Shown: one piece after another, positions 959 through 61,812 of the stretch
Layout: the number at the start of each line of letters is the position of its first letter
How positions within the stretch are numbered: position 1 is the stretch's first letter
NCBI GenBank assembly: GCA_965649765.1
Contig: OZ287758.1
Coordinates: forward strand, 21,266,001 to 21,330,000
Direction of reading: 5' to 3'
From: Bispira polyomma
Taxonomy: Eukaryota
Length of the DNA stretch: 64,000 nucleotides
Notes under the pieces: generated by a model
The model's database searches: none
What the model was told of the DNA's origin: nothing
What the model saw: the letters and a program-made list of their open reading frames with translations, nothing else
Program-made: the position numbers and the translations under genes

Positions 959-1500
959 GTAATTAATCCATGGGTCTGGGACCAGCTAAAAACACGTACA
1001 CACCAGTATAGAGTGTTACTTCATACAGCTGTAACAAAAGGAATCTATAGTTCCCCCCAGTTTTGTGTACATGTGCAGGAAAAGCCTGGATTTACAAAAT
1101 TGTTTTTTTTCCCCAGTCACAAAACACACTACACGGGTACCCCAGCCAACATACTGGCAGATTTATGGTGCACTTATTATACTCGACAATCTTATTTTCT
1201 TCTACATCAACATAAAAAACAAGCAATGTTGCATCTGTTACTCGCAAAGTGAAAGTTGTATGTATAAAAATATAAGCTTAGAGTAGTTAACCCGTCATGT
1301 GTAATTAATCCGTCGGTCTGATATCAACTAAAAACACACTGGTATAATTTCACTTGATGCTGCTGTTAAAAAGCAGAATCTATAGTCACCCAGCTTTTTT
1401 CAGATATACAAGGGGAGACTGGATTTAGAGAGATGTTTTGCCCTAGTCACACCCACACAAAGAACACTGTTGCCCCCGGATACTGTACTGACAGTATAAG
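959..1500. repeat. Degenerate tandem duplication (~200 bp; copies at ~959-1165 and ~1301-1500)
   Basis: Both copies read gtaattaatcc..ggtctg..ctaaaaacac..gaatctatagt..ctggattta..agtcaca in the same order. Confidence 0.6.
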
Positions 1501-4275: not shown

Positions 4276-4370
4276 TCATTGCTTCCTGTTTACTGGATTC
4301 CACTAGATTCAGACGATCCATTTCAGCAATAGCAACATATTCAGAAGTTAAGGCAGATTCACTACTTTTC
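4276..4370 (-). CDS. Internal coding exon of an unidentified - strand gene (KSSESALTSEYVAIAEMDRLNLVESSKQEAM)
   Basis: On - strand: atgtacag|G AAA AGT...GCA ATG A|gtaagt. The 95-nt exon is open when entered in phase 2 and exits in phase 1; entry phase matches the 8978-9017 exon. Confidence 0.65.
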
Positions 4371-6879
4371 CTGTACATATTTGTATGCTCAAAAATAAAT
4401 AAAACAATAACAGGCAATATGCCAAGTTTAAAATATTTAACTCCCTGAAATTGTCAAGAATGTTTACTTTTCATTCATCAAAATATCATATCCATTGATA
4501 CAGTTTATTTGTTCAGTAAATGTCTCTATAGTAAGATTGTAGTTTGCTACAAATTCAAATGACATATGTAATGGTGTTAAGTGTTCTAAATCCAAGCAAC
4601 CATACCACATGAAATAGAATTGTTTAAAATATTAAAGTGTTTGGATGAAGTGCCTCTATAAACCACAAAACCCTCTGCATATATTTAATACATGCACATT
4701 ATTTTCATGGATAGCCAATAAAATTGAAAATAAACAATTGGTTTACAGTTAAACAGTTAATGGTTTTAAAGTCTGGTAACTAATGCTTTCGTACTCCAGC
4801 ACTGTTGTTTTAAGTTTACCAGTTTTAACAAAAAACATATGAACAGTTGTTTCTTATTTTTCTTGGTAGACCCCACATAACTTATACATTGTTATGTTAG
4901 GGTAAGACTTAAAAGGGTAATGCTAAGGTTGTCTAATATTTAAGAATTTACACAAAATAATTATTTAACAACAATCTCTATCACTTTGGCTCTCTCCTAT
5001 TGACCTCTATATGACCTTAATTTTTACTGTAAAATGACTGTTGCATTGATTCCTAAGGCTTTGTATTATACTAATGTATTTTTAGGATATCACAATATAG
5101 AAAAGAAAGGCTGTAGTTGTATGATTCTATGCAGACATCTCGCTCTTATACAAACAGCAAAGTGCTGGTATATCTTCACATGTCTTTGTCTTAAGAATAA
5201 TTGTTTTGTAAATATATCTACTTAATTTTTCTATAGTTTACCCACTACACACGTCAGCAGCATAGTGTTTTGTAAAATAGATAGTTGGTATAAATCAATA
5301 TAAAAATCATGCAAGATCAGAGAAAATATTTTACTTCAAGTGATTAGTGTGTTAAAACATATTTAGTAATTAATGTGTCGCTGGCTGAAACGAAAAAAAA
5401 CGCCATAATTGCATTGAATATTATGGCCGACCTTAATCTCGGTTTTTTGAAATATGACCTCTAATGTTTTAAATCTGGCTGCAAAAAATAATCCTTTTCT
5501 CTACAGCTATATTATAAAAATAAAATAGAACAATACACATCAAATAGTTTGAGTTTAATGAAGCCAAATTAGAACTGACAGAAAAAGGATGGAATGGATG
5601 TGTTTCAAGCACAGACTAGTACAAGTCGATCATGCATGAATAGTATGAAAACAACATCAGCATTGATGATAATATAAAAGCAACACCTGTATGTTAGTGT
5701 GAAATACCCAAATTTACTAGGTCACCCAGATGTTATAGTACAGAAATCACTGTTACCACCACTTTTTTTATTGGAAAGAGTCCACTATACTTTCTATATT
5801 GTCATGATTTCAAATATATTGCTGCATCTGGTACACATATGCACACAGCCATCTTTGTATATCTTAAACTTTTGATTTGAAGTTTTCCTAACTCATTGAA
5901 ATGTAAGACATAACTTGTGTCATATAATTTCATGAACATGTCTGAATTACTTCGATATAGGCATCTTTGCTGCACATCAAATGCTATTTTCTGATCTTAT
6001 TATTATATAGATACACATTTTTTATATTTCTTAAACGTGTGTTTGATGAAAATTATTTATAGAAACTAAGGGAATTAATAACCTGGAAATTTTATTTTAC
6101 CAATCGTCTTTAGATATGGTAAATTACATTGTAGAAATACTAAATGTGCTTGTTGTGGTAAATAGGCCATTGACTATACCAGTTTGTAACTGTACACTGC
6201 CAAAGATTTTTTATGCTCTAAGCATAACCTATATATTACTAATTATAATGAAATTGGAATGTCAAAGGATTGTAAGGATGGTTTGCATAAATATATGTTG
6301 CCCAACACATGACAAAATTGTTTAATTGTGTTCATGCTTACAATACTGGAAACTGTTTAAGATTTAAGAAAATACAACTAAATGCTATGTAAAAAGCATG
6401 TGTCCTAGTGTTAAAATGTTACTATGACACCCCCCTCCCCCTGACATTAAATCTTTATTTTCTCTGTCCAGCTTTAAAAGTAGTTTAAAGAAAATGTTGA
6501 TTTGCCCAGCAGTCCACTTTAGGGGACTGCTGCCTCAGTTACCCTCCTGTCCAATTCTCTTTTTCTAAAACTATTCTTGTGCCAAAAATTCCACACTCAC
6601 TAATTAGGTATGCAGCCAATCAATACCAGACCCACATCAATTAGCGTGGTCATCCCCACATACATTCTCCATTTTGGAAAAGTCATTCCAAGGGTAAACA
6701 ACCATTTTAGAAAAATTCCCACCACCATTCCCCTTCATGCCTCCACTAGGAAACTTTTCATTTAACAAAAGCTCTTATACACAGTTTAATACTTAATAGT
6801 TCATTACATTTGACACAGTCAGGTGTACTAATAGTGTTGGTAACTCGCACTTCAGATGTTTAAGGCTCTGCATTAGCAT

Positions 6880-7200
6880 AGCCCTGGTATTAGTAGAGTG
6901 TCGGTAAGTCGCACTCTAGGCAGTATTCGACCCCGGGACCGTGTGGAGATGGGATTCTGTCTTTCAATCTTTCCTCCGTGGGGACTCAGAGTTGAATAGA
7001 AGCACTGTGAGACAGAATCCCCTCTCTGCTAGGCGATTAGGTGCCATAGGTCACGGGTTCCAATGCTGTCTAATGCTGTCTTAAAATTTGTCACACTGCA
7101 CGTAATATCAGGTTGAATGATATTGAGGTAATATGACTGTGGTTGTATAACGCACTAATATACCAGACTATTGTGTTGACGCGATGGTGGACGTTATAGG
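6880..7200 (+). mobile_element. Degenerate tRNA-derived SINE
   Basis: A-box-like tagtagagtgtcggt and B-box-like gtattcgacccc; internal inverted pair gggattctgtct/agacagaatccc; SINE-like tail ending ggtggacgtta. Confidence 0.55.
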
Positions 7201-42994: not shown

Positions 42995-45430
42995 TTTTAT
43001 CAGTCAAGTAGTTGTTCTCATCAGAGGCTGTTAAATAGTGAATCCAATATCTTGAAACTGAATTAAAATGATTTTAAGTGAAAATTATTGCCAATAGAGG
43101 CCCACAATGTAATCATTCAGAATTTAAAGTTCTTGTCACTTTATAATGACCACAAGTATTAATCTTATTGATACAGATGGAATAGGAGTGGAAATATGGT
43201 TTCAACAATACTAATAAAAATATTTTCCTTTTAGTACAAGGAAATACTTTTCAAAAGTATATATAAGTTTACGTTTCAGAGTCAAACAGTAGGAATTTCG
43301 TGTGGCCTACTGTAGAACTATATTTTAGTGCCATTGAGTATAATACTCTGACTAGGTGTATGAATTTTTGAATCAGCCCAGTGTTAGTGGGTGATGTTAA
43401 CCAGGTAACATGGATCACTTACATGGTGTTTTATAAAACAATAGTGTGATATGACATACTTTGCATCAATGTACATTATACATAACATTGTGACGTCACA
43501 AAGCATAATGAAGCATATCTGCCTTTCGGTGAGGTGCACAATATTTGAAATACGTACACCTCAGTTAGGGGTGTGGCAAGCTGCATGAATATATTGATAC
43601 CAGCAGGGTTTGTGGTAGGGTAGGCCCAGATAAAATATAATTCCTGGCGTCTACGCCTAGTGGTAGAATCAGGGTTGATGTCCTCTCGTAGCCATTACAT
43701 CACACTAAAAGCAATGTTTTTCACAGAATGATGGTCCTGTATAAAGTGTTTAATAGGGGGAGACCTCTCCCCTGGCTTCCCTTGCTAGAGTCATCAGTTG
43801 GCATTTTAAGTTTGTTAGACATATCATCTCATAGAGAGTGTGTCACTGCTCAGATTGGTTGCTGGTATGGGTGTACCAGTGGTGTTGAATGCAGTAGTGT
43901 ATTCCACATGTAGGTGGTTAAAGCAGTACTCTAGGCAGTATTATTCACATTCATGGTGACCCGGTGTAAAATAGAATAAAGTTGCTTTATGTAATATATG
44001 GGGTACAATGCCTTATAAAAATATTTTTGTGTTAATTTATATTTCGATCAGTCTAGTGGTTGTTCTCGTCAGAGGCTGTAAAATGATTCTAATAATTCCA
44101 TAAGGTATTAAAAGTGGCTCCGATTGGATCCGGCTGATCCAGGAGTAGGTCCGCCAGATCAGTAGGAGCAATAGTGAATCCAATCTGTTGAAAATAGATT
44201 AAAATGATTTTAAATGAAAATCATCACCAATATAGGCCCATAATGTTCTCATACAGATTTTAAAGTGGTTGTTCAATTCATAATGACCACAAGTATTAAT
44301 CTAATGGATATAAATGGAACAGACATGGAAATATGGTTTCCACAATAATAATGAAAATGTTTTTCTTTTAGTATTTAATAAAAAACTTTTCAAAAATATA
44401 ATTAAGTTTAGGTTTCAGAGTCAAAGAGTAGGCATTTTAGAGTGTCCTATGGTAAAACCAGATGTAGATGGAACAGGCGTGGAAATATGGTTTCCACAAT
44501 GCTAATAAAAATATTTTTCATTTAGTATAAGGAAATACTTTTCAAAAATATAATAAGTTTAACTTTCAGAGTCAAAGAGTAGGCATTTTAGTGTGGCCTA
44601 CAGTACAACCAGATATAGATGGAACAGGCGTGGAAATATGGTTTCCACAATACTAATAAAAATATTTCCTTTTTAGTATAAGGAAATACTTTTCAAAAAT
44701 ATAATTAGGTTTAGGTTTCAGAGTCAAAGAGTAGGCATTTTACTGTAACCTACTGTAGCGCTATATTTTAGTCCTATTAAGTATATTAATCTGACTAATT
44801 GTATATATTTTTGAATCAGCCCAATGGTAGTGGGTAATGGTAACCAGGTAACATGGATCAGCTACCTGGTGTTTTTGGTAAAAAGATAGTGTTGTAATAT
44901 TGTTGTGTTGAAATAAGTTAATAAGTACACTTCGGTTAGGAGGTGGCATACACACACAGAAATATATTGATAACCGCAGGGTTTGTGGTAGGAAAGGCCT
45001 AGATGAAATATAATTCCTGGCGTCTATGCCTGGTGGTGAAATCTTGGTTGGTGTCCGGTCCTTGCCATTGCATAACACTAATAGCCATGTTTTTTACAGA
45101 ATGTTGGTCCTGTGTAAAGTGTCCACTAGAGGGAGACTCCTTCTCTTGGTGCCCTAGCTGGAGTTATCACTTGACCTTCTAAGTTTGTTAGACACATCTT
45201 CTAATATGGAGAGTGTGTCACTGCTCAGATTGGTTGCTGGTATGGTATACCAGTGGCAAGGATGTTGAATGCAGTAGTGGATTCCAAATCTCAGTGGTTA
45301 AAGCAGTACTCAAGGCAGTATCACTCACATTCATGGTGACTCGGTGTGAATAGAATAAAGTTGCTTGATGTAAATGAGCAGGATACAATCACCAACAATG
45401 CCTTGTATAAATATTTTTGTGTTAATTTAT
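42995..45430. repeat. Diverged ~1-kb tandem duplication containing a 3x ~152-bp internal tandem
   Basis: ~43000-44040 is colinear with ~44050-45430; the unit atggaacag..ggaaatatggtttccacaat..tttcagagtcaaagagtaggcatttta repeats at 44314, 44468 and 44619. Confidence 0.8.
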
Positions 45431-45729
45431 AGGGTGGCAAAAATGAGTTCAGGTTGGAAAGAGGGAGGGTGGCACAGAGGAGAGTGGCATATAGTAATAG
45501 GAGTGGCGAAAGAGAGGGTGGCAAAAGGGAAAGTGGCAAAAAGTAAGGAGTAACTTACTACATTGATGTTACTGTAACTGTTATGGTTGCTAAGGTATGA
45601 ATAATTTTAATAAAGACAAAAGTTTTTCTAATATGAACTTGCAGCAAAAATTTTCACAAGAGATATAAATATCTCGCCTAGATTAGCCTTGCCTGCCCTA
45701 TTAGAACTCACCTGCATTTAGACTTTTCA

Positions 45730-47055
45730 CACCTTCCACGAGATTGAACCCCTGCCATCACTGGTTGTTCCTGTATTCTACCTCTACCCCGCGGAAGTAG
45801 CCATTCTCGAAAAAAGTAAAGAAATTAAAACAGCTTCTATTGATCATGTGGGATATGAACCAACATAACTATACTTTGCAGTCCTGTATCTTACGACTGC
45901 ACCACTGGGCTAGATGGAATACCTTGGTATAGTTTTGTACAAGTTGTGTTATCAAATAAAGTAATTAACGTGTTAATTATTTGGCGAAATTACCCTTTTT
46001 AAATAGAGTTAAGCAAATATTTGGATAAACAATGCATGACAAGTTGTAAAAATTGTATTTTTGGATGGTTTTATTTGGGCAGATTTTACATATTGCCTCA
46101 AAAAGCTTAAATGCATATTTCTTTACACTGAAGTGAAACAAAGAAACTCCTTTTCATTGACTAAGATATTAATGTATCTATAAACTACAGATTAGGCAAA
46201 TCTCTGAAAATAATAGCAGATTAATAGTATTGTAAGATCTTTTTAAATTTAATTATATTCGTGAAACAATTGTTATTGAAATAAAAGAGATACTTATAAT
46301 GTTTAAATATTTTTTAAACAAAAACAATCTTTTACAGGATTTAGACCCACTTTATAAGATGATTAGCAAAAACATAGTGTACACTTATATCACTAGTATT
46401 AGTTATGTGCACATTTTATTGCACAGAAGACTGGTAATCAATTGACTATTGATGTTTCAATTGAACATTGATTATTAAAAAAAATCACTAAACACAACCC
46501 TACCTTAAACACGCTGTTGAAAGCATCAGACTTCCTGGTCTAGTGGTAACGGTAACAGTTTGAAACAGATATCAGCATATTCTTTCTCGGATGTTTTTTC
46601 TCCATTCAAACAACATCTTTTCCAAATACATCTTCACTTGCGACCCCGTTACATTCTCACGGAGAGATAACTTTTAGCAAAAGAGCAACAAGAGTCATCT
46701 TTTGAAAAAAATATCTTGGTCAATGAAAAGAAGTTCCTTTGTTTTACTTCAGTGTAAAGTTTTTAATTACTCTATTTTATAACACAACTTGTACGAAACT
46801 GTTGCGAGGTATTTCATGTAGCTCAGTGGTACAGTAGTATGATACATAACTCTAAAGTGTATGAACGTGGGTTCAAATCCAACATGAACAGTAAAATTGG
46901 AAACTTTTTTGATTTCTTTACTTCATTCAAAAATGGCTACTTCCACACTCAAATATACAAAAAAAGATATCAAACATTGTGTCCTCTCGTGGGGTAGAGG
47001 TAGAACGCACGGAGAACCAGTGGGACAACCAAACTGGATTGGCAGGGGTTCAATC
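45730..47055. repeat. Large fold-back (inverted repeat) with tRNA-like arms
   Basis: 45730-45968 pairs with rc 46762-47055 and 46121-46170 pairs with rc 46710-46759. The right arm has tagctcagtggt (A box) and gggttcaaatcc (B box). Confidence 0.8.
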
Positions 47056-47760
47056 CCCGTGAGAAAGAGTGAACCAATGAGACTGCAGGGGTTTAATCCT
47101 TGTGGAGCTCTAGAAGGGACAACCAGTGAGGATTGAGGGTTAAATCCCAGAGGGCTAAGTAATAGAGATGAGGGCTAGGTGAGAATGGGGGGAGCACTAG
47201 GTTAACAAGGTCAGAGAAGAGGGAGTTCTGAGGATAGGAGTTCCTTAGGCGAGAGACCTCTCAGAATGGAGTACAGTCTGAGGGCAGCGCTAGGTATAAC
47301 AAAGGGGAGAGGGCAAGGTTAAACAGGTCTGTGAAAGGGAGAAGAAGACAACTGTGAGAATGGGGGACAGCTACCTCAAACAGCGGTCACATGGGGAAAG
47401 GCTACCAGGGACAACCAATGAGCCCGGAACAGAGCAAACTCCATAAACGCTGGAGGGTTTCAATCTCTTGTAGGCCCAGAAGGGACAACCAGTTAAGTCG
47501 GAGGGTTAAATCCCCAAAGAGGCCTAGAAGGGACTAGCCAGAGGTTTCAATCCCCCCGGATGCATAGAAGGGACAACCAATGAGGCCGGACGGTTAAATA
47601 CCTGGTAAGGCCGGCTGTGGATTCTTAGAATGGACAACTACTGAGGGCACAGGGGTTCAATCCCTATGGAGCCCTAAAAAGAACAAGCAGTGAAGCCGGA
47701 AGTTTCAATACCTCGGATGCAAAGAATGCACAACCAATCAGACCGGAAGGTTAAATACCA
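47020..47760 (+). repeat. Degenerate ~45-bp tandem array, consensus agaagggacaaccaatgaggccggaggg(t/g)tt(c/a)aatccc
   Basis: About 10 units in two blocks (~47020-47150 and ~47405-47760), each ending in a GGTTCAATCC-like motif. Confidence 0.75.
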
Positions 47761-47829
47761 AAAAAAAAAATTTATGTTAAAAAAACCTTTAGTCTTCATC
47801 ACAAATTATTCAGACCTTAGCAACCATAC

Positions 47830-50110
47830 CACAGTTACATAAATGTAGTACTTTTTCCCCACAATTTATAATTCGGTCTGAAATCTTGGAAGGTTTGAAA
47901 GTATGATTCTGTTATGGTCTTTAAAGGTAGTAGAAAGGTTGAATTCCATACATGGTTTTCTAAAAAGGGAAATGGGCTGATCAATGTATTGATACTGCTT
48001 AGTGGCTTTGATTGACTTCTGGTCATTTCTAAATATATTTCTCAGGATTTTACTTTTTCTAGTGATTTCAAGCACTGATTTATTTCGATGTATCAAATGA
48101 GAAAGAATTTTTCTTTCAGTCAAATTAGAAACCTTTAACTCTCCATGATAATGGAATGACAGTTTTTAAGGTATGGTACTGCACAAAGTTTAGATTCCAA
48201 ATAAATATAATGTTGATAGAATCCATATCTAAATGTTTTGTAAAATAAAATAAAGAACATACAACATACTAAACAGATGTGAAATTTGAGGAATCACATT
48301 GAAAACTGTCGTTGTGACCAAATCTGCAAAGTTTTTTTTGCATTTTTTTTTAGTTTTCCTTCTAATTGTCGGCTGTTTTATTCAGAAAGACTGTCTGAAA
48401 ACCAAATCTCACATGTTTTAAATGGTCGGGTATTATATTTTAAGCCTCAACATGTAAGGTATTTTTATGTCTTTGTTATGATTTGTCCCAAAAGGAATGA
48501 CTTCAGTTTTTTCTAAATTTAATTTTAACCCAGATACTACAGAAAAAAGTGTTAAAAATGTAAATAGCTTCACTGATAGATTGAATATCTGATAAAAATA
48601 AAGTGGTAACATCTGCCAATTGGGTTATTTTAATTCGACATCATTTTTTATGTATGCCACGAATAGTTTCAGTTCTTCTCACTTTATTAGCTAAAATTTC
48701 TGCTAATAATATTAAAAGAAGGGCTAGTATAGGGCAACCCTGTCTTATTGAACTTGTTATGTTGAAATAATCACCCAATGTTTCCAACACGTGTTTTAAT
48801 ATTTGTGTATAAGGTTTTGATTCAGGTAATAAAGTCATTATCATAGTTTGAAGCATTCAAAAAAGAATGACCACTCAACACTAGCGAAGGCCTTTTCAAA
48901 ATCAATAAGAGTAATGAAGCCACATCTATTATCCTGTTCTGTCATTACTAAGATACCATCAATGGTTCGAATGGCTTCTAGTACATATCGTTCTTGTATG
49001 TAACCAACTTGATCCGTGTTAACTAGTTTACCTATTACTTTTTGTAATGTATCCGCTAGAACTTTTGTTAAAATCTTATATTCTGTATTGAGTAAACTAA
49101 CTGGTCTCCAATTTTTTAAGTGTCTCACATCTTTGTCCTTTTTTGGTATTAAGTGATATACAGCTATGCATTGCTCTTGTGACAGTTCGCTGTTAGTAAA
49201 CAAATAGTTGTAGCTGTCAATTGATGGATCCTTAATGTTTTGCCAAAGTAATTTGTAAAAGTTTGTTGTAAAACCATCACTACCGGGTGATTTATCATTT
49301 GCTATACAACGAAGAGCATTTGCATAATCTTTATACTCTAGTTGAGCTTCACAAAATAGCTTCTGTTAGTTTAGGAATATTATGACTATTTAAAAATTCA
49401 AATTTTGTTTAATTGGTTTATTAAAGTTGTTTTGTTTAGATGTGTGGAGATTTTCATAAAATTTCTTTTGTTCTTCAATTATTTCATCTGAATCTATACC
49501 TTTACTATTATTACCACGAATGAGTTTTTTAATATACTTTGTATTACGGTTTCTTTTTTTTTGATTAAGGAAAAATTACCTGTTCTTTTCCCCATATTCA
49601 ACATATTTCACCTTTGAGCTTAAAATGGACCATTCAACCTTACTTTTTGAAAATTTTCCCATTCTTGTTTTGCTATTAGCTATTGGTCAAATTTGCTGGT
49701 GTTCATAGCTAACGAATTCTCTAATTCAGATGCAACTAATGCCAGTTCTTTTTTCCTCTTTTTTCTTTCTCTGGCTTTTTTCAAAGAGTAAGTTATTGTT
49801 TCACTCCTTATGTTGCACTTCACAAAATCCTAAAGTTGTGATTAATTTGGCATAATTACGGTTGATTTTATAGACCTTAAACTGTCCTTTACAAGTCTGA
49901 TATAATTTGGATCTGTCAATAGATTATTATTGAAATTCCAGTACTCCCACCCTATTTTTATGTTTTTTAATAATTCAGGTTTTATAGAAATTATACTATA
50001 ATCAGAACTGTTGCCTATTATTTGATAGTCTAATGACATTGAAACTAGCCCAAAATCAATTCTGTTATATTGAGTTAAATCTGGATTTCTTGTTCTCCAC
50101 CACAAAAGTC
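47830..50110 (-). mobile_element. Decayed L1/Tx1-clade LINE ORF2 (endonuclease C-terminus plus reverse transcriptase)
   Basis: Fragments RIDFGLVS..SDYSII..YWNFNNNLL (APE), PKKDKD..LKNWRPVSLLNTEYKILTKVLA..DQVGY..IDFEKAF..VEW and IRQGCPI (RT); stops and frameshifts. Confidence 0.92.
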
Positions 50111-51687
50111 TATTTCTTTAATGCAAGATAACAATCATACCAGCACACAAGTTCTCAAATAAATAAACACACATTCACAGAACATATAACAAAACACAAA
50201 CTCACGGAACATGAAGTTTCAAACAGTACACCAACTATTAAACTAAATACTTAAGTCATAGATGACGCACAAGTAGTACTGAACAGCTATATAAATGGTG
50301 ACAGACAGGACAAGATTATGACGACAGACAGTATATCAGACAGTATATCAGACAAACACACGGATGACAACGAAACTATGAGTTTAAACCAAGTAAGAAC
50401 AAATTCAAGTTTACTGGCCCTGACAGGGATGCAGTAATGCTTGACAACTACAATAAATTAATAAAAGTCACAGAAATTAGACAGGCTTACCAAATTACAA
50501 AAAGGTGAGAATTCCAATTAAGAACGACCTTAACATACCTAATTGGAGGAAATATTTAACAAATTACACCAATACAACACTAGTAGAATATTTGCAATAC
50601 GGTTTCTCTGTATCACTATATGACAGAAATAGGGTTAATGCCCAGTCAGTGAATAATCACCATTCTGCCTGAATTTACCCAGATGAGATAAATAGCTAAA
50701 TAGACAAAGGAGACAGAGGTTAAAAGGGGAGCCATCCTTGGTCTTATAAATAGTAACATACATAATGAGTGTCACTTCTCCCTCTTACTGATGCGTCCGA
50801 AAGACAATAATAAACGCAGCTTAATACTGAACCTTTCACACCTGGCAGGTCACTCAGTAAACAACGGTACTATTGAAAACAGTTATGACGGTACACTTTT
50901 TAAATTGATCCTACCAACAATTGACCAATTTACAACACACTTATAGACACTAGGCAGCAAGGAAATGTTAGCAAAGGTCAATATTGCAGACGGATTTCAA
51001 AATTTAAAAATCGACCCCTACGACTGCCTTAAGTTAGGTTACCAATGGGAGAAAAATTATTACTTAGATTTAAGCGTTACATTCGGATTAACTCGGAGAA
51101 TGGCCATTTTTATGAAGGCCTCTGACGCAGTAACTTATATAATGAAAGAACAGGGTTATAAAGTATGGAATTATATAGACAATTTCATTATTTGCGAAAC
51201 AGAAGACAAGGCCACTTCAGCCTATGAATTTCTACAAAAAGTGTTACACGATCTAGGCCTGCCAATTAATGAAAAGGAACTCATCCCCTAGGAAGTGTGT
51301 AGCTTGCATGGGCATTACAGTAGATTTTCATCACGAAACGCTTGGAATAGACGATGACAAATTAGTTTCCATTTATGGAACAAATAGGAATTCAAAAATT
51401 TGAAGCAGAGTACTGAACACCAATATCAATTCCTCCTATGAAAACTGCTTTATGTAAACAGGTGCATTAAACCTGCACGAGTATTCATTGCTACAAGAAT
51501 CCAGAAGTAATACCATAATTAAACTCACAAAAGAATATCTTAAACATATCTCATAAGGTGATTAATAATTACTTTTTGGCTATTAGGTTCAATTGCAAAA
51601 TACTTAATATACTAAACTCAGGTCTATATCACATCATCACACCATCTGACGTTTTTCTAGCCCCTCCAGTGATCCATCTATTCTAAA

Positions 51688-52173
51688 ATGAAAGCAAAAC
51701 AAACCAAACCAGAAATTCACCAAATTCATCCAACTTCGATAAAACCTAGCAATCTTTGGCTCTGCCCGGTCAGAGCTTTTTCTTGTTTTTGTAAAAAACA
51801 CCATTACCCCCCACAGGGACCTTTATTGGCTGACCCAGCACAAAAAGGAACATGCCTTTCCGATACAAAACTAAGAGACAACCTCAAGAAAATATTAACC
51901 ACTTCAAACATTCCAAAAGAAGGTCAATCCTTTCATTGCTCCAGAAGGTCAGGGGCTTCCCTGGCCTTCAAAAATAACATAAAATTACAACACATTCAAA
52001 AACATGTATGTTGGAAATCTGATGGTGTTTGGTGGTACTTAGAATCAAAATCCCACGCTTCTTCTATCATACACTCTACTTTTGCATCTAGTATACTTCC
52101 TCTCCTTAAGTTTGGCTTCGGCATTTGTTTTTATTTTTTAACATGGCTTAAAATTCTGTATAGATGTACATAA
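51688..52173 (+). pseudogene. Tyrosine recombinase C-terminal domain of the YR retrotransposon
   Basis: LCPVRAF ... SFHCSRRSGASLAF (HxxR) ... HVCWKSDGVWWY (degenerate GxWxSDAVxxY with catalytic Tyr). Confidence 0.85.
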
Positions 52174-52976
52174 AGGCAAAGTTTATGTGTAATAAAATAT
52201 CCCAAACAGCGTCAGAGTTTTTCCAACATCCAAGGTCAAAAAACCACAACTCATACACATAACCTAGTAAAATCATCACTAACTATAAATCTGACCTTTA
52301 TTCCTTAAAGGTCAAACTCTCCATGCTTGTGCAATAGACTGTAATATTCACTGCAGGTACGGCATGGCCCTTAATCGAGGGCACAATATCCCACCCTTAA
52401 CTTACAACAGACTATGTGAGGCATAATATCACATTTTCACTTTAATTTACTTATCAATAATTTGTGTACAAGCTTTACCTCATCAGGGGGAGCTCACACA
52501 ACCAATAGCAAATTGTTTACTACAGGGAGTTTCCCGCTTTTAGTATTGTGGAGTCAAAATTTCGCTAGAAACCAAAGAGCTCGCATCTAAAAAGTTAACA
52601 CACCTCTCCTCACCCTTTAATTTAAAGTGTATACATTATTCTAGGACTATACTCCAATATTTTCTTTACTGATGCACTAGGGTTGCATTACCACCCTATG
52701 CTAGGGTTGTATTTTCGCCCTAAAATTTTTTATATGTTGTTTTATCTGCCGTAGTGGCATTTGTTTTTAAATTTTAACAAGGCTAAAAATTCTGTATAGA
52801 TGTACATATAAGACAAAGTTTATGTCTAAAAAAATATCCCTAATAGCGTCAGAGTTTTTCCAACATCCAAGGTCCAAACCACCACTCATACACATGACCT
52901 ACTAAGATCATCACTAACTATAAATCTGACCTTTATGTCTTAAAGGTCAGACTCTCCGTGCTTGTGCAATAGACTG
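52120..52976 (+). repeat. Split direct repeats: B1 52120-52341, putative A2 52342-52755, B2 52756-52976
   Basis: ~220-bp near-identical direct repeats running ggcatttgttttt ... gcttgtgcaatagactg. Confidence 0.9.
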
Positions 52977-55154
52977 AAAGGGAATTTACTTGGAAGGGAA
53001 CTTTTGGTGATGGGAAAATTTTCTGTAGACTAAAGAGGTTTTATGTTTTAAAAAGTTTTATCAATTCTGTTTCTTCTGTTTCGCTTTTGCCTATGCCTTT
53101 TGCTATTACTGATAATACTTTTGATAAGATTGTTTTTGATTTGTCCAATTTTAATAATTTTATAGGTCCAGGTTTATGAAACCGCCACAGTTCCCTTTCT
53201 CAGCACCCCACTTCTCGTCACCGCCCTTATCGCCACCCCATTTCAAGCCACCATTTCAGGAGTCTGTTTCACCAAATCTATTTAAGTTAAAAGTTTTCTT
53301 ATATATAAGTTTTTCCTGCCTTCTACCCCTTGACCATCTTGTTCATCATCTAGCAGTCGAATAAAATAAATAATATTGCATAGCTCCTTCAGCTTATGCC
53401 CTGGTCCCACCTGATGTACGTTAGTTTATGGAAGTCTCGCAAGGGCCGTGTAAATAATTGCTGCAAAAGTTGATGCAAAACCTAAATATATTGCTTTTCT
53501 TCACATGAAAGGCATCAGCAGACGTCATAATTCACGGCAAAAACTGTAAAGTCCCACAGGGGATGCTTAAGTGCACGTCAAAGTACATATTTTATCCCTT
53601 GTATGGCATGTATAAGTACGCCAATACCTGTAAAAGGACTTAATTTTTTATATTGAAGTATGTTAAATTAGGTTAAACCACTTGATTCACACATTGTGAC
53701 GAATATAGCCGTTATACTACATCACCTCTCGCAAATATTAGTTTAAACCACGTATCAATCTGACGTGGTTTGCGTGTCCAAATTTCAAACAGTTTGAAAT
53801 TATTAATTTCTTACATGTCATATCTTCCGCCAGGTTATGCATGCTTATGTCTATCACGTCAGCTCCCGCAAAAGCTGCACAAATTAATTTTCTAACGACA
53901 GCAAACGTGACGGCCGGTGGGACCAGGACTTTACAGGAATAAAATCGATGTGGTACACTGCTTTTAAAATAAACATATTTTTAAATATTTGGTGTAAACA
54001 GTTGTTGCAAAAACATAATTTGTGATGTCCTGAAAGTCGGTCAATATATTTTTGTTCAGTATAGTAGAATTGCTCTCCATCTGTGGCACAGGGGTTAATA
54101 AGGAGCATTTCCCCAATTGTCATTTACTAATTAAAAGGAGAACTTGAAATTATAAACTCCTTCCTTTTATTAAACCTTTTTTCACATTAAAATACAACTG
54201 TTGCCTTGTCCTAATATGTTACAAGTAGCTGCAGTCACTATCAATATCAGCCTGATATATTTATTTATAAACAGAGAAATGTAATGTACTAACAATTTCC
54301 TATTGTGTTGAACTGAATGAAAATATAATAATACTTTGTTTGTGTTGATTACTTGTTGACAGACATAGGTTCTGGGAATAACAAATGCCCTCAACTCCTC
54401 TATATATTGTCTTATTATTGTTGTATCGTGTAGTCAATGGTCTGTAAAGCAGATTTAACTACACACATTATATCAAGACACAACTATCTCATATATATAG
54501 TGACAAAAGCTAATAATATTTACATCACTTTCTTAATGTAGAGCTTTGGTCACATATAAATATAGAAGCTATTTCCTAACTATTATGACAACAATGGAAT
54601 ATTCATGAAATAGTGTGCTTTATACAACAGATTACAATAATATCAAATTTGAAACAGTCACATTGAATTCAAAATGTATTCAAAAATGTGTGTTCAATAT
54701 ACGGCTGCAAACCACGTGCACATATCCAAAAAAATTAAACAGAATGGAAAGTAAAGGGAGATCTCTTTGTCATATTAAAAGCATATGTGAATTAAGTGAA
54801 CCATAATTCCCACAATGAACACTTTATTACGCCTTTCAAGAAATAGGACAAAATTGCACATTGGGAAATACTGCCCTAATTTGAACATATTGTGTACATA
54901 GTACTTAGTGGGGGTACTAAATATTATCAAATGACATGTACTTGGAAAACAAACACATTATGGATTACTTCTGTGGAAAATTCTAATTAAAAATATACTA
55001 AAAAGAAATGGATTTATTTAAAAAATGATTAATATGTGAAGCTGTATATCAGAATACATAGCCATATGTTGAATGTCATTACCTAGGCACATAAACATCT
55101 TTAATACAAGTTAACTTTACACAGTAATAACCTTAAACAAATGATTATAAGACA

Positions 55155-55226
55155 ATGATTAGAGAAACCACGTTCATCCAAGGTGAGACAAGCATAGTGA
55201 ATGAAGAAGCACAGGCCAAAGGAGAG
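55155..55226 (+). CDS. Putative first coding exon of the ninjurin-like gene (MIRETTFIQGETSIVNEEAQAKGE)
   Basis: acaATG, 24 codons, then GAG|gtagat phase-0 donor matching the phase-0 acceptor at 58843. The donor is only moderate, and an alternative phase-1 donor G|gtgaga lies at 55183. Confidence 0.35.
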
Positions 55227-55699
55227 GTAGATATTCTAATATTCTCATATAACATGGCGCCTATCAAAATGGATATGAAAAGGTTAGTTTTTTTGCTTGA
55301 TTTTAATAGGTTCATTGTTGATTTTATTACTCTTTTAGACAGAAACTAGGAAACACAAACGTTTGTGATTTCAAACACAGGACTTTAAACAGCATCACTG
55401 TACTATACAAACCTTGATTTTACTGCTTTCTAAATACCAAAATAAACTTCAGTAGCAGCTGTAAAGTGTTTGTTAACATTGTGACATAGCATTGTATGAC
55501 GAACAGGAAAGACACAAGGCTAAGGAATAGTTGAATCCAATAATACCACCTGCCCCTTGACACCCCTTCCCCCCGAAGAATGTCCAGTCTCCAATAATGT
55601 CACCCATCAACTGGGTCAAACCATGGATCGACAGAAGGAAGACCATTGGCTGTCAAACCACTTTAATGCAGGAGTAAAGGGAAGAGGGAGAGTTACTGT

Positions 55700-56545
55700 T
55701 CCTTGCCGTATAAATTTAGGGTGGGCAGATCGTCTATCACCAAGTTTGTCCCAGAGATCTGCAAGGCCATTAATCAAGAATATGAGGCAGAAAACCTGTG
55801 CTGCCCTACTTCCCCCGCAGGCTGGATGAAACTTGAAGAAATACACAGAAATAGATGGATCATCCCTCACGCTGTGGCCTTCATTGATGAAAAACATGTA
55901 ACCATCAAGAAACCTCCAAAGGCTGGCAATGAATATTTCAACTATGAAGGGTTTCATTTAATTGTGGTGTCAGCCCTATCTGATAGTGACAGATTTATTT
56001 GGGTGGACCTTGGCTGCAGTCCCTATTAAGATGCTTAAATTATCAACCATTCGGAACTGAATAAAAGTTGGAAGACAGACCAATCGGGCTACCTAGACCT
56101 GAACCACTATTTGATGGGTCCAGACGTGATGTGAACTACTTTCTACTGGGGGACAACCCCTTTGGTCTAAGGCCCTGGTTGATGAAACCTTATTCCAGAA
56201 GAGCACTGATTAATACTCAAACGATATGCAACTACAGAATGTCCAGGGGGTAGGAGGGTTGTTAAAAATGCTTTCGGAATATTGGTCAGCAGGTTCCTGG
56301 TTCTACTGACAACTATGTAACAACAGCCTTTTGTGGCCACAAACATTATGGTAACATGTGTTATATTACCCAAAATCTTAGGAAACCACTGTGGAAACCC
56401 AGCACTGGAGCACCCAAACCCACAAGATGATCCACCTGAGTCTGAGGAGCAACTAATAATGGATCCACTGCCCAATGCAAAAAGAAATCCATTTACACCG
56501 GCAAAAGAGCTGAGGGACACTTTAATGAACTACTTTATGAAGTAA
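55700..56545 (+). pseudogene. PIF/Harbinger DDE transposase (HARBI1-like), decayed
   Basis: FRVGRSSITKFVPEICKAI..IDEKHVTIKKP..YFNYEGFH..RFIWVDLG; YFLLGDNPFGLRPWLMKPY..NYRMSR..VVKNAFGILVSRF; stops and frameshifts. Confidence 0.92.
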
Positions 56546-57414
56546 TCAGAATAACAGAATATGAAGTCTGACCTGAGCCTAACCTTAGCCGGACCTGAAC
56601 AGTAACCACCTCAGCTTGATGAGAAGCCAACCCAAGCCTGAGATGACATAGTAGCTGTAACTCCAAAAAGGTCATTTTCATCACCACCCAAATACAAAAA
56701 AAAAAAAAAAACAATTCATAAGGTTCGAACCCAACATCCATACATGTAATATTTTGGGCCCCACAATTGAAAACATAATAATTGCGAACCCAACATGAAA
56801 TATTCAAGACTCCAACACACACACTGAAGAAAAAAATCCTTATTAAAATAAATTCAAACCAAAGGCCTTCACTGACATAAAAACTTTCTACTGTGGCCCC
56901 CCTTATTATATAACCTAAAGATTCCACAACAATAGACAGGTTAACAGGCCATTGAGTGTCAGAGATCATGGGTTCAAACCGTGTTAGTGGTGTAACCAGT
57001 TGTTTGGGAAAGGGACTGGGGTCAAACCATGTCAATGGTGTGACCACTTGTTTTGGAAAGTGCATTTCGGGAAATGATTTTTTTTCCAATAAGAAACTCT
57101 TTGTATTTCCCAACTGTCAAAATATAGGGTTACAAAGAGTTTATCTTTTTTTTCTAAATTATTTTTTTTTCTTTCTTTTTATCAAAAATTTGAATTTACA
57201 AAGGAATAGGGGCTTCTTTTTCAATTTTGTTATTATTTTGGGTTTTTATTTTTAGGGACAAACACTGTTTATTTTTTACTAGGAGATTTACTGTCATTTA
57301 ATTTTGAGTTGGGTTTGAACTCTGGGCCAGTGGTTAATAAGTTCTGTGCGTGTGAATTGTTTTGTGGGGACCGTGTAATGCTTGTTTGGATTTTTTTATT
57401 AGGGGCTTGAACAC

Positions 57415-57640
57415 TAGGCCTGACATGTCTGACTACGTGCGACCCCAGAAAAAAAACCCATGGGTTTCGACTTCTTGATCTCCAGCTTGTGAAACGGGTG
57501 TGCTGAGACTCCAACTATGCCCTGATGTCTGTAACCTTTAGACCAAAGTTGATTGCAAGCTCATCCCAAAGTCAGTTCTTCAGTGAGCGGTCCTTGCATT
57601 GCTCATTCCTCTTGTTCCTGTTTGTCACGACATGGGTCAT
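57415..57640 (-). pseudogene. Harbinger accessory Myb/SANT (MADF-like) ORF, decayed, convergent with the transposase
   Basis: - strand reads NKRNEQCKDRSLKN*LWDELAINFGLKVTDIRA*LESQHTRF...FLGSHV, a MADF-like pattern; convergent two-ORF layouts occur in Harbingers. Confidence 0.7.
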
Positions 57641-58843
57641 CTTGCCTGTTTTCTTAACTTTACCATGAGACTGGGATGACTCTGTTGATTTTAATCCAAT
57701 CTCTCAACCTGTCACTCTGTTGCGGGGTAGCCCTGTCATCTCTTCTCTGTGTTTCTGAATCCTCACATGAAACCCCACCTCAAACTTTGGATTTGACTAC
57801 TTTTTTATCCCATTCCCTTCTCTCTCTTGCCTCTAGGTATGATAAATGTTGTATGTAATAAAAAACCTATGCTATAAAATCGTCCCTAAACTCAAAACTA
57901 TTAAAAATAATAAAAAAAACTTCCTAATAAAAATACAACATGAAACACCAACCAACAGTCTGCAAATATGAAGAGTGTGGAACTGCCGGGACCTATTTAT
58001 ACCGAAAACCTATTGGTTGGGAGTATATACGTCACATCCTACAAGTTTAATTGTATGTTTCCCCGGTTCGATCTTTTAGCTCCTCCAGCAGATCCTGTAG
58101 TCTTAGACGTTCTGTCCTACTCTGGCCACTTTAGGGTAAAAAACGTATTACGTTTAAGTTATAATGGGGTAGCTATAAGTTCAATCAGGGTGCAGTCTGT
58201 CAAATTGGGATGTCAAGTTCGATCGCCCATTCTGTCCTACCCAAACAGGGGGAAACTCCCAGTAGGATCAAATAAGCCAGTGCTAGGACATGTCTGGAGT
58301 GCGATAAGACAGAACGAAATGGCAATATGATGGAACATATGTGTTTTTTGGGTCAGGGAAGCTAGTCCGCAAGAGTTTTCCGGCAGACTATACAAACTCA
58401 AATGTTTTCGGCCCGCATCTCAAAAAAGGCAAATGTGTAATCGCTACATAATGCAAAAAACTCCTGTGTAAATGTTGATATATAGCACATATTACCTTTA
58501 TGCCCTGGTTATAGTAAAGGCGATTTTAGTATATTCTTTGTGTAAGTCTATACATTACCCAATAGTGCCATAGAAATCACTTGTTATTAAAACTATGTAT
58601 TTCTTTAGTTTTAATTCAGTTTAATGATAGAGGAAGTCAGAAAATGGTAGTTGGTCAAGGTTTTCTGCTCTCTTAATCACTGTGTTTCAACAGGTTTATT
58701 GCCAACGTTACCTTGGTCCAAGATTCGAAACCTTGTAGGTGTTTTATGCCAATTACATCATGAAAATGATTATTGATGTAACCTAACAAATTATGTTTGT
58801 GATAATATTCTAATATCCAATTATATGTGTGTACAATGTACAG

Positions 58844-58995
58844 GGTAAAGACAAAACCAAACCAATAAAGACAATTCAACCAGACAGCACAGAGAATGAC
58901 CAAGTCAAAGCTGAGGAGAAGAGGAAGAAGCTGGAAAAGAAGAAACAGAATGTCAGTATAACTCTGGCTGGATTGACGAAAGACACTGAGGAAAG
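58844..58995 (+). CDS. Ninjurin-like gene exon: charged N-terminal segment (GKDKTKPIK...EEKRKKLEKKKQNVSITLAGLTKDTEE)
   Basis: atgtacag|GGT acceptor, open frame, ending GAA AG|gcaagt (GC donor, phase 2) that joins exon 59587 in frame. Confidence 0.75.
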
Positions 58996-59586
58996 GCAAG
59001 TGGTGGTTTATCACTATGTACACAAGTTTACAACCGTTTTATTAAAAACCGAGCTATGTGAACGGTGTGATGTTGTATTCCAGTGCGATTGTACGGGTAG
59101 ATGTCACTTTACAATTACCACTGTTTTTTAATTAGCTTGTTTGCCATGGACACATATTGTTCAATGTACCAAATTAAATTTTGATGCATATATGTATATT
59201 TCTCCTGCTGTGTAGTGTTATCACCATGCTATCACTCTCCTGACAGGCTCAGTTTGTTACTGATTTGATTGTACAGCAACAATAGTCACTCGGGTATTTG
59301 TTCTTTGCTATGCACTCCACTGCTGACCCAAAACACGCATAATGCAAACTTTTTGTGGTTATCTTCAATTCTGTAACTAAATATGACGCCAATTTAATAA
59401 AAGCCACTCGGTGTGCTGTAGGTCTGACATAAAAACTTACATTACACTTGATCATATACTTCTCTAATGAATTCATTTTCACCTCAGCAATAAATATTAA
59501 AGATACATTTTTTATAAACTTAAAAACGTTAAAAACGTCCATTTATAATGTATATTCTATTGCATTATATTATATAATACAATCAG

Positions 59587-59746
59587 GTCGAAGTCCATTG
59601 AACAAACCAATCAGCGTACTCAAATGGCCACTGCTACAAGCATGTTTATTGTCCATGTGGGCATCCTACGGACAGTGGTCAACTCAGATGATGTCCAGTA
59701 CTATGACATACAGGTGGGATTGGTCGTCACAGCACTGATCCTGCAG
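59587..59746 (+). CDS. Ninjurin-like gene exon: amphipathic region plus first half of TM1 (..MATATSMFIVHVGILRTVVNSDDVQYYDIQVGLVVTALILQ)
   Basis: aatcag|G acceptor and CTG CAG|gtaatt donor; aligns with NINJ1 LKAVV..FYVPLVVLISISLVLQ. Confidence 0.88.
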
Positions 59747-60240
59747 GTAATTAGTCTCGGTGATACGCAGTCAACACATGGTAGCGGTAGCAAATTAGTT
59801 GTTTTCAAATGGTTTGGTAATGGTAGCAAATTGGTCGTTTTCAAATAGTCTGGTAAATTAAACATTAGTATTTTATTGTATTACAACTACAACCTTTTAG
59901 CAATGTTCAATTGCCATCACAATTTATTGTAGTTTATTGGGCTATAAACCAATAATATTTTAATTTATATGATTTGCAGAACCTTTAAGAGTGAATTAAT
60001 CTTACAATATGGTAAAGAAAAAAAACAGTAAACTGCTGAAAAGCTGCTATCTCATAGCTCATTACTATTTGAGCAATCTATTAAAGGTTATTTCTGTTCC
60101 TTTCTAAGTTATTGGTAGATTACTAACAGTATATATTTTACCTCTCTATTCAATGTTATTTGAGTTCTTTTTTTAATTTATTGCTGGATTAGTAACAGTA
60201 TATATTACCACTCTGTTTTATATTCAACTAATTTCTGGAG

Positions 60241-60714
60241 TACTGGCAGTCTGTATACTATTTGTGTTTTAGCTCATTGCTGAATACTGGTAGACTGTAT
60301 ACTATTTGTGTTCTAGCTCATTGCTGAGTACTGGCAGTCTGTATACTATTTGTGTTCTAGCTCATTGTGAATACTGGCAGTCTGTATACTATTTGTGTTC
60401 TAGCTCATTGCTGGATACTGGTAGACTGTTTAGTCTCTGTTTTCTAACTCATTGCTAGATACTTGTAGTCTGTATACTCTCTGTTTCGCAACTCATTGCT
60501 GGATACTGGTAGACTGTATACTCTGTTTTCTTGCTCATTGCTGGATACTGGTAGTCTGTATACTCTGTTTTCTTGCTCATTGTTGGATACTGGTAGACTG
60601 TATACTTTGTTTTCTTGCTCATTGCTGGATACTGGTAGTCTGTATACTCTGTTTTCTAAGTCATTGATGGATACTTGTAGACTGTATAATGTTTGTTTTC
60701 TAGCTCATTGCTGG
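60241..60714 (+). repeat. Intronic minisatellite, 11 units of 42-44 bp, each a copy of the splice acceptor plus exon start
   Basis: Unit tactggtagactgtatactctgttttct(ag)ctcattgctgga; the last unit is the real acceptor (AG 60702-60703) running into the exon. Confidence 0.92.
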
Positions 60715-60871
60715 TTTACTAGCTATCTATATTGCTGTTGTGAAACAATACTACACTGAACACCGTGGGGATGTTACAGAGGACTGTGTCAAGATCTGCT
60801 TCCCCTGCTCATGTATTCCCGTTCAAACCTGGAACAGGCAGAAGATGCAGTGTTCAAATATTGATATATGG
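60704..60871 (+). CDS. Ninjurin-like gene exon: end of TM1 plus Cys-rich loop (LIAGLLAIYIAVVKQYY...DCVKICFPCSCIPVQTWNRQKMQCSNIDIW)
   Basis: tgttttctag|CTC acceptor, 56 open codons, TGG|gtaaaa donor; phase 0 at both ends. Confidence 0.85.
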
Positions 60872-61434
60872 GTAAAATATTAGTATTGTTTTCAAATATT
60901 AATATATAAAATTTTTCTTCTACTGTTGGATATGCCATAAATAACCAACACTGAGTGAGAGGTCTAGGTGTGTAGCTCAAATCGTTGGTCTCTGGTAAAG
61001 TCGCCACTAAAGCGAACTCCGCTCCAGTCATACCAATTCTTCATAACAAACTCATACCACAGAGGTTTAGTTAACATTCACTGAATAATTATTTTGTAGA
61101 AAATTAATTCTATAAATCCTTATTAAACACTATAAATGTATCTTTACATTAGGGAGCAAATGCACTTTGGCGGTATCAATTATGTACGTTTGTTCATAAA
61201 CGTTTTTCAAAATGGCAAAAAGAATGTGACCTAAAAGTGTCTTTTCTGAATCAAATTTTACACAAAATGAGATAAAAGTAAGCGTTAATAGATAATTTAT
61301 GACAGTTAGAAAGAAATAGTTTATAGTAGTTCAGCAAAAGATAGAGGCAAAGCCCCAAGACCCCTCATTAAAATTTTGAAGTGGAGTTAGTGACGTCATA
61401 CTGTACTAAATGCCCTTCTGTTGTCACTCTATAG

Positions 61435-61812
61435 CTACAAGACGACACAAAAGAAGCCCATCATGCCCCTGAGATAGAGGCTGACCACCCAACTATTAGG
61501 TGCTGTCCATATCACTGCCTCTGTCACCAGTATGAACCAGAGGAAAGAGAGGTACTGAATGTCCACCAGAGATGGCAGGAAGACATGATCAAGTCCAAGC
61601 TGAGAGCTGTGATGTGTGACGATGAGGAAGAGAACAGAGATATGTTAGACCTTCAGGGAGAGATACTCGGGGGCTATGTGCAGGAGATCAGAAGGAACAA
61701 GATCTTAAGGAGAGCCACATTCTGGCAGAATGTTATGGCATTGGTGGTGTTCTTTGTGTTTGTACTCAATGCCCTCTTCACTGGGTTTGGACTGATCAAA
61801 CTGGGAGGTTAA
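61435..61812 (+). CDS. Ninjurin-like gene last coding exon: rest of loop plus TM2 (..RCCPYHCLCH..FWQNVMALVVFFVFVLNALFTGFGLIKLGG*)
   Basis: gtcactctatag|CTA acceptor in frame with ORF 61585-61812; VFVLNALFTGFG matches the ninjurin C-terminal VVVNIFITAFG motif. Confidence 0.88.
   Translation, partial: LQDDTKEAHHAPEIEADHPTIRCCPYHCLCHQYEPEEREVLNVHQRWQEDMIKSKLRAVMCDDEEENRDMLDLQGEILGGYVQEIRRNKILRRATFWQNVMALVVFFVFVLNALFTGFGLIKLGG

Follow-up and report, generated by a model that had tools for sequence, protein, structure and literature searches.

A Bispira polyomma gene that probably encodes a short-stalk member of a long-loop ninjurin branch

We analysed a 64,000-nucleotide stretch of the Bispira polyomma genome (C11:21266001-21330000, hereafter the window) and describe a gene on its forward strand, at 58844-61812, whose product appears to be built on the scaffold of the ninjurins and carries 138 residues between its two membrane helices. 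NINJ1, one of the ninjurins, is the executioner of plasma-membrane rupture in dying cells. Taken together, our results are best explained by a conserved gene for a short-stalk member of a long-loop ninjurin branch whose insert, a helical hairpin with putatively acylated Cys clusters, would serve as a cytosolic handle, and we consider this explanation probable. Since the product lacks the short turn, one of the features that define the described ninjurins, we have filed the gene and its relatives as a distinct long-loop branch. This branch is undescribed and new relative to the described ninjurins; our literature search found no description of a long-loop ninjurin architecture, and none of the ten relatives looked up has a name in its source record.

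Results

A four-exon gene with a long stretch between two membrane helices

Analysis of the window confirmed a four-exon gene with a long inter-helix stretch, all of it on the + strand (slashes mark splice borders). Exon 1 (58844-58995), which is not the first coding exon, follows the acceptor tacag/GGT, encodes a K/E-rich N-terminal segment (GKDK...GLTKDTEE plus 2 nt) and ends two nucleotides into a codon at the donor AG/gcaagt of a GC-AG intron. Exon 2 (59587-59746; acceptor tcag/G, donor CAG/gtaatt) consists of one nucleotide and 53 codons and holds the predicted counterpart of the ninjurin alpha1/alpha2 helix region (SIEQ...MFIVHVGILRTVV, about 59594-59680), after which TM1, the first membrane helix, begins with its first half (IQVGLVVTALILQ, 59708-59746). 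The second half of TM1 (LIAGLLAIYIAVV, 60704-60742) opens exon 3 (60704-60871; acceptor ttctag/CTC, donor TGG/gtaaaa) and leads through a YY..H..D linker to Cys cluster 1 (DCVKICFPCSC, 60785-60814), beyond which lie a single Cys (60851-60853) and an NIDIW motif. In exon 4 (61435-61812; acceptor ctatag/CTA, stop codon TAA at 61810-61812), an acidic linker with His residues precedes Cys cluster 2 (CCPYHCLCH, 61501-61527); next come a short stalk or helical hairpin (about 61534-61713) and the second membrane helix, TM2 (FWQN...LNALFTGFG, 61720-61791). The four exons sum to 858 nt, that is 285 codons and a stop, with consistent phases.

A preliminary description of this DNA had proposed four phase-consistent exons encoding 285 amino acids. 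The exon ends and the 858-nt sum stand as proposed; the 5' end of that model is incomplete, and the fit of exon 1 to exon 2 needs the GC donor. All the ninjurin-like motifs it named are found in the exon translations, and the stretch of about 140 Cys/His-rich residues that it placed between the helices measures 138 amino acids (exon 3 K14 to exon 4 T95), with 10 Cys, 7 His, 26 D+E and 18 K+R.

The exon borders were compared with those of an orthologue on a 1.7-Mb contig of a related genome (L001/L013). GT donors near the end of exon 1 all leave phase 0, and exon 2 needs two preceding bases. In the orthologue, exon 1 ends in ...CAG AGA AG/gtgagt and exon 2 starts with ttacag/A TCT; because this shows the corresponding split codon at the exon 1/exon 2 junction, we place a GC donor and the split codon AG/G in the window. 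The same split codon and the GC donor resolve the phase, and an alternative exon 2 acceptor at 59593 was dropped. The donor of exon 1 reads GC in the window (gcaagt, 58996-59001) and GT in the orthologue (gtgagt, L013 5208-5213), pointing to a GT-to-GC donor change on a conserved exon 1 junction. GCAAGT is the usual form of a GC donor. At the other end of the loop, exon 3 closes with the NI(D/E)xW motif, and in the intronless relatives P0006 and P0004 the loop runs on continuously after this motif; the exon 3/exon 4 junction is therefore supported. Contigs from three independent public DNA runs pass unbroken over the exon-intron borders with zero differences, and the exons are identical in all three.

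Both in the window and in the orthologue, the exon 1 frame is closed upstream and contains no in-frame ATG, and at least one 5' coding exon must therefore be missing from the model. No such exon was found when the 14.8 kb upstream (44001-58843) were compared by blastn and tblastx with the 5 kb upstream of the orthologous exon 1.

Conservation and selection

A word-index search with exon 4 matched only two open reading frame (ORF) fragments in public assemblies, one of which lies on the L001/L013 contig. In tblastn alignments over their full length, exon 2 is 74% identical in amino acids to L001 4885-5043, exon 3 is 71% identical to L001 9225-9392 and exon 4 is 77% identical to L001 9917-10249; exon 4 is also 69% identical to a third sequence, the 746-bp contig L002. 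Exon 1 has its orthologue at L013 5065-5207 (GK...GLTKDTQR, donor AG/gtgagt, identical phase), with 55% identity over 22 amino acids (tblastn, E 0.026) and an alignment that stops at the shared exon end; it sits 9.5 kb upstream of exon 2 in the related genome. The exon ends agree between the two genomes; the introns cannot be aligned, and one of them is four times longer in the related genome. The ratio of nonsynonymous to synonymous substitution rates (dN/dS), computed for each exon from Nei-Gojobori counts, is 0.115 for exon 2, 0.112 for the Cys-rich exon 3 and 0.131 for exon 4; adding up the counts of exons 2-4 gives a pooled value of 0.125 at a dS of 1.17. These values point to an intact gene under purifying selection.

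Should the exons instead be chance open frames joined over introns, or a decaying copy of a family member, one might expect some of what is seen here: a start codon was not found, no public RNA run holds the stretch, the exon 1 donor is non-canonical, the neighbourhood is rich in transposons and one paralogue carries an in-frame TGA. We nevertheless regard an artefact or pseudogene as highly improbable. The dN/dS is 0.11-0.13 in all three exons at saturating dS, exon ends and phases are kept in the orthologue, gcaagt is the form that GC donors usually take, and the match to full-length relatives described below is collinear and complete.

Conservation of the Cys residues in orthologues had been set beforehand as a test that could refute the preliminary description. 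When every orthologue available at each position is considered, seven of the ten Cys are conserved, and for these seven the description withstands the test. The five Cys of exon 3 all recur in the orthologue, and the exon 4 residues C23, C24, H27 and H31 are common to the three sequences of the orthologue group. At C28, and likewise at C30, one orthologue has Trp instead, and C61 is found only in the Bispira polyomma copy. Three of the seven His are conserved among the orthologues.

Relationship to the ninjurins

A phmmer search with exon 4 against 1.84 billion representatives returned 39 matches, many of them full-length proteins of 228-373 amino acids that share one common layout. Their N-terminal part consists of a helix, (S/T)IEQAKDRAQITAATSMSIVHVALLK, followed by YY and a TM1 that ends in L-x-L-Q-x-x-A-G. 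After TM1 come Y...Y..D...DC.K.CCPC.C, a variable and mostly acidic linker, and C-C-P-(W/F/Y/C)-x-C; the C-terminal part is a long coiled coil, then QGEIL..YV..I.K.RVLKR.TFWQ and a TM2 ending in LNAFITGFG. The window exons match a 17-member profile of full-length relatives in order (Z = 1e6): exon 2 at profile positions 4-45 (30.5 bits, E 1.2e-5), exon 3 at 47-84 (39.6 bits, E 2.1e-8) and exon 4 at 115-168 and 220-278 (96.3 bits, E 1.1e-25), with positions 169-219 skipped.

The relatives in turn lead to the ninjurins. When a 15-member family profile was searched against all PDB sequences, the best five matches were four of NINJ1 (E 5.5e-6 to 1.1e-5) and one of NINJ2 (8e-5), and the sixth reached only E 0.15. 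The PDB entries compared were 8cqr, 8sza, 8uip, 9bia and 8szb. The alignment falls into two stretches, NINJ1 61-100 and 116-145, flanking the insert, and window exons 2-3 and exon 4 occupy the profile regions aligned to NINJ1 alpha3 and alpha4. Relatives also pass the Pfam Ninjurin gathering score (PF04923, 26 bits) individually, namely P0038 (36.0 bits), P0017 (35.5), P0033 (34.4), P0024 (30.2), P0023 (29.8), P0020 (29.2), the L007 ORF (27.8), P0034 (27.0) and P0004 (26.4), with alignments that extend to PF04923 profile positions 4-6. The claim that a ninjurin scaffold here accommodates a large Cys/His-rich insert between its helices is thus supported, indirectly but strongly, by a two-step profile link, from exons to relatives and from relatives to NINJ1/NINJ2, and homology of the gene product to ninjurin is supported at the level of sequence profiles.

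An independent two-helix membrane protein might resemble ninjurins merely by hydrophobic composition. Hydrophobic helices can produce spurious profile scores, only about 70 residues align, and NINJ1 is not among the fold-search matches listed. Such an origin would hardly be expected to make ninjurins of all five top PDB matches with the next E-value four orders of magnitude worse, or to align both helices in order with the polar landmarks Q91, G95, N133, T137 and G140 (NINJ1 numbering) kept. At least nine relatives score above the curated Pfam threshold, and a Pfam control on 14 other genomes gave zero matches. We consider non-homology very unlikely and retain homology to the ninjurins. Two further searches gave nothing to set beside these results: the ESM Atlas searched with P0038 returned no usable match, and a word-index search with the family alignment returned only two of its own members, hence being uninformative on relatives.

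Topology and fold of the insert

The insert begins with cluster 1 (C-x3-C-x2-C-x-C) just after TM1, continues with the variable acidic linker and reaches the second cluster, C-C-P-aromatic-x-C. Its orientation was approached through statistics on 15 full-length relatives, the window protein having no tail to test. The density of N-x-S/T sequons is 4.4 per 100 amino acids in the C-terminal tails beyond TM2, as against 1.1 in the N termini and 0.43 in the loops. K+R residues number 2-6 among the 15 positions that precede TM2 and 0-2 among the 15 that follow it, and about 124 of the 136 Cys lie in the loop. From these relatives we infer that the insert faces the cytosol and that both termini lie outside; with the insert in the cytosol, disulfides would be unlikely.

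With the topology reversed, the insert would be an extracellular or luminal disulfide-rich domain, and a high Cys content is indeed typical of secreted domains. This arrangement seems to us very improbable, given that sequons are ten times denser in the C-terminal tails of the relatives than in their loops, that the positive charge around TM2 is found mainly on its loop side and that the long K/E-rich coiled coils of the relatives are typical of cytosolic proteins. It also conflicts with NINJ1, whose N terminus is outside (PMC10307626).

For the insert, AlphaFold2 models of two relatives predict a hairpin of helices. In the model of P0006 (17-row alignment; predicted local distance difference test score, pLDDT, 74.9), a helix at 2-33 and TM1 at 41-75 are followed by short strands at both Cys clusters (91-94 and 143-146), which are paired together, and by helices 152-201 and 205-281, an antiparallel pair that runs on without a break into TM2. 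The model of the short-stalk relative P0004 (pLDDT 72.5) has a P0006-like plan with a 26-residue outgoing helix; its Cys region has no strands and a confidence of 56-63. The C-terminal part of the insert is accordingly modelled as two antiparallel helices running into TM2.

The Cys clusters

The preliminary description had suggested palmitoylation, metal binding or redox activity for the insert, ideas that stay hypothetical. Among 17 relatives, each cluster has one nearly invariant Cys, and cluster 2 has a nearly invariant Pro as well. Cluster 1 differs across the family in how many Cys it has and in how they are spaced (CCPCKC, CCCKI, CHCKL, CCSQLCSNLC), and this variability suits acylation better than a fixed metal site. 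We therefore lean, with modest confidence, towards the clusters being S-acylated membrane anchors, a reading favoured over a fixed zinc site.

The zinc alternative would have both clusters form one small zinc-binding module of two C-C-P-x-x-C knuckles (with His in the orthologue group) that clamps the base of the stalk and possibly acts as a metal or redox switch. The pairing of strands E91-94 and E143-146 at the two clusters of the P0006 model fits such a module, as do the near-invariant residues just named and the conservation throughout the orthologue group of the C23, C24, H27 and H31 set together with one of C28/C30. It fits poorly with the wide variation of cluster 1, with the strandless and low-scoring Cys region of the P0004 model and with His residues that are not family-wide, and no zinc-finger family was matched in Pfam by the window exons or the relatives. 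When zinc and the exon 3 and exon 4 products were entered as separate chains, the complex prediction scored 0.02, which speaks neither for nor against zinc. On balance we judge a zinc module unlikely, though deserving of serious consideration, and keep S-acylation as the working assumption.

The long-loop family in the genome

Six-frame searches of the genome (1.04 Gb, 75 contigs) with exons 2, 3 and 4 and with PF04923 located 14-15 family loci on four contigs, some of them in tandem. The PF04923 scan gave 13 matches, of which 12 pair with an exon 4-like last exon 0.6-3.3 kb distant. The window locus is absent from this listing because an intron splits its TM1. The best match in the genome, at 38.2 bits, is L014 1316-2086 on the - strand (G000:C11:21244315-21245085), a long-loop paralogue about 80 kb upstream of the window gene and on the opposite strand. 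Cluster 1 of L014 is very rich in Cys (GCCYGMLNCLTCCCRTC). No canonical short-loop ninjurin was seen in the six-frame search, which could miss one split into small exons. Judging by these loci and the database relatives, the long-loop architecture is not peculiar to the window gene; it belongs to a family with many relatives elsewhere.

The window gene shares the order of its elements with the long-stalk relatives (P0003, P0006, P0038 and P0039, among others, and the paralogues L005, L007 and L014). Each of its Cys clusters has a counterpart in them, and so have the NI(D/E)xW motif, the TM2 motif and the QGEIL..YV..I.K.RVLKR.TFWQ sequence that leads into TM2. Unlike them, the window gene and its orthologues lack about 50 mid-stalk profile positions (169-219), as do P0004 and P0017, and the window protein ends six residues past TM2 without the glycosylated tail and has His in cluster 2. 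On this comparison it is best classed as a short-stalk subtype of the long-loop branch. Gene structure differs as well. In paralogues L005 and L007 a single exon runs from the N terminus through TM1 and both Cys clusters and takes in most of the stalk; the intron inside TM1 (LILQ/LIAG) is present in the window gene and its orthologue and not in the paralogues examined, and the window gene has gained it.

Two side observations concern other family members. A paralogue adjoining the L005 gene (G000:C3:71224537-71224803) has an in-frame TGA in its exon 3-like part and may be a pseudogene. Four database relatives of about 200-230 amino acids (P0015, P0028, P0029 and P0032) consist only of the coiled coil and the TM2 motif, with no TM1 and no Cys clusters; these may represent either a tail-anchored side branch of the family or split genes captured only as ORF fragments.

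Repeats and transposons around the gene

Intron 2 holds a minisatellite at 60231-60714 (+ strand; 44-bp unit x 11.2, 86% matches), over which short-read DNA contigs break up. Its unit ends in the exon 3 acceptor (ttctag) followed by the opening bases of that exon, CTCATTGCTGG, and about ten decoy acceptors consequently lie just upstream of the real one. Intron 3 contains a high-copy interspersed repeat at 61108-61449 (no strand assigned), recognised by contig depth: the summed depth is 470-7200 there against about 15-70 in the flanks, 20-100 times as much in the three DNA runs, with many divergent loose ends. Upstream of the gene lie a decayed Harbinger-type DDE transposase (55808-56536, + strand; tblastx 49-59% to L001 DDE_Tnp_4 ORFs, with frame changes) and a reverse-transcriptase fragment (48844-49203, - strand; RVT_1, 54.6 bits), making the region where the first exon is expected transposon-rich.

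Discussion

Several results weigh against our overall reading. The window exons, searched singly and not as one spliced product, gave no Ninjurin match in Pfam at E up to 10, and phmmer of exons 2 and 4 against PDB found no ninjurin, only a chance connexin match at E 0.9. With single exons matching neither Pfam Ninjurin nor NINJ1 in PDB, membership rests on the transitive profile argument. Foldseek against PDB and a wide VIA-align search returned only generic coiled-coil and helical-hairpin matches, NINJ1 not being among those listed. The Cys region of the predicted structures is of low confidence. Neither the start codon nor the first exon was located, and the public runs that hold the stretch are three DNA runs and no RNA run, the splice junctions being predicted. 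Finally, an ungapped extension of the PDB alignment puts N and A at the positions of NINJ1 K45 and D53, a mapping that is unreliable.

If the proposed reading is correct, S-acylated Cys clusters would anchor the helical hairpin at its base in the inner leaflet. NINJ1 protomers pack side by side, and the hairpin of the long-loop proteins could be a cytosolic handle that sets or senses a similar packing of the membrane hairpins. A further step, which we offer as speculation and think rather improbable, is that the insert is a control handle that triggers or blocks ninjurin polymerisation from inside the cell, that the 14 or more diversified paralogues are separately wired rupture executioners of an invertebrate and that the short-stalk copy has a different set-point. 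The signal read by such a handle might be the acylation state of the Cys knuckles, their zinc or redox state, or cleavage of the acidic linker.

To our knowledge, what switches NINJ1 on is still unclear, and the moving parts of NINJ1 that we know of are all either extracellular or embedded in the membrane. A ninjurin branch that is conserved, has expanded and has a structured cytosolic domain in the turn of the hairpin would amount to a natural experiment. If long-loop proteins polymerise, the insert would show how the hairpin can be coupled to intracellular events; if they do not, they would show a role of the ninjurin scaffold apart from lysis. Direct targets for mutagenesis are offered by the conserved Cys knuckles and by a genome that contains both short-stalk and long-stalk forms.

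Comparison with known systems

In juxtamembrane poly-Cys S-acylation sites, neighbouring Cys lie within about 15-25 residues of the point where a membrane helix ends on the cytosolic side. The clusters of the long-loop family resemble such sites in that they occur near TM1, are often followed by a basic stretch in the relatives and vary in number and spacing. They differ in that cluster 2 is at least 50 residues from TM1 and has a conserved Pro and an aromatic residue.

As for the ninjurins themselves, NINJ2 is said to be unable to rupture membranes, judging by the title of a 2025 paper in Cell by Sahoo et al., listed among the references of PMC13475620. The window protein is like NINJ1 and NINJ2 in having a predicted N-terminal helix region followed by two hydrophobic helices, which correspond to the alpha3/alpha4 hairpin. 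In NINJ1 the helices span 44-55 (alpha1), 58-74 (alpha2), 79-103 (alpha3) and 114-138 (alpha4), and the alpha3-alpha4 turn consists of the ten residues 104-113 (PMC10307626). The end of TM1 in the window protein, L-x-L-Q-x-x-x-G, corresponds to NINJ1 Q91 and G95, and its TM2, F..N...F.....N...T.FG, to F117, N120, F127, N133, T137 and G140. The topology we propose, with both termini outside, would also be that of NINJ1. An inter-protomer K45-D53 pair, the most prominent contact at the interface, holds NINJ1 filaments together (PMC10307626); these two residues could not be mapped with confidence in the window protein because the PDB alignment begins at NINJ1 residue 61. Unlike NINJ1, in which T123, I134, F135 and A138 occupy positions held by A, A, L and G here, the window protein has Cys clusters and a predicted cytosolic helical hairpin, both absent from NINJ1, within an inter-helix turn of 138 residues (117-244 in the relatives) in place of 10.

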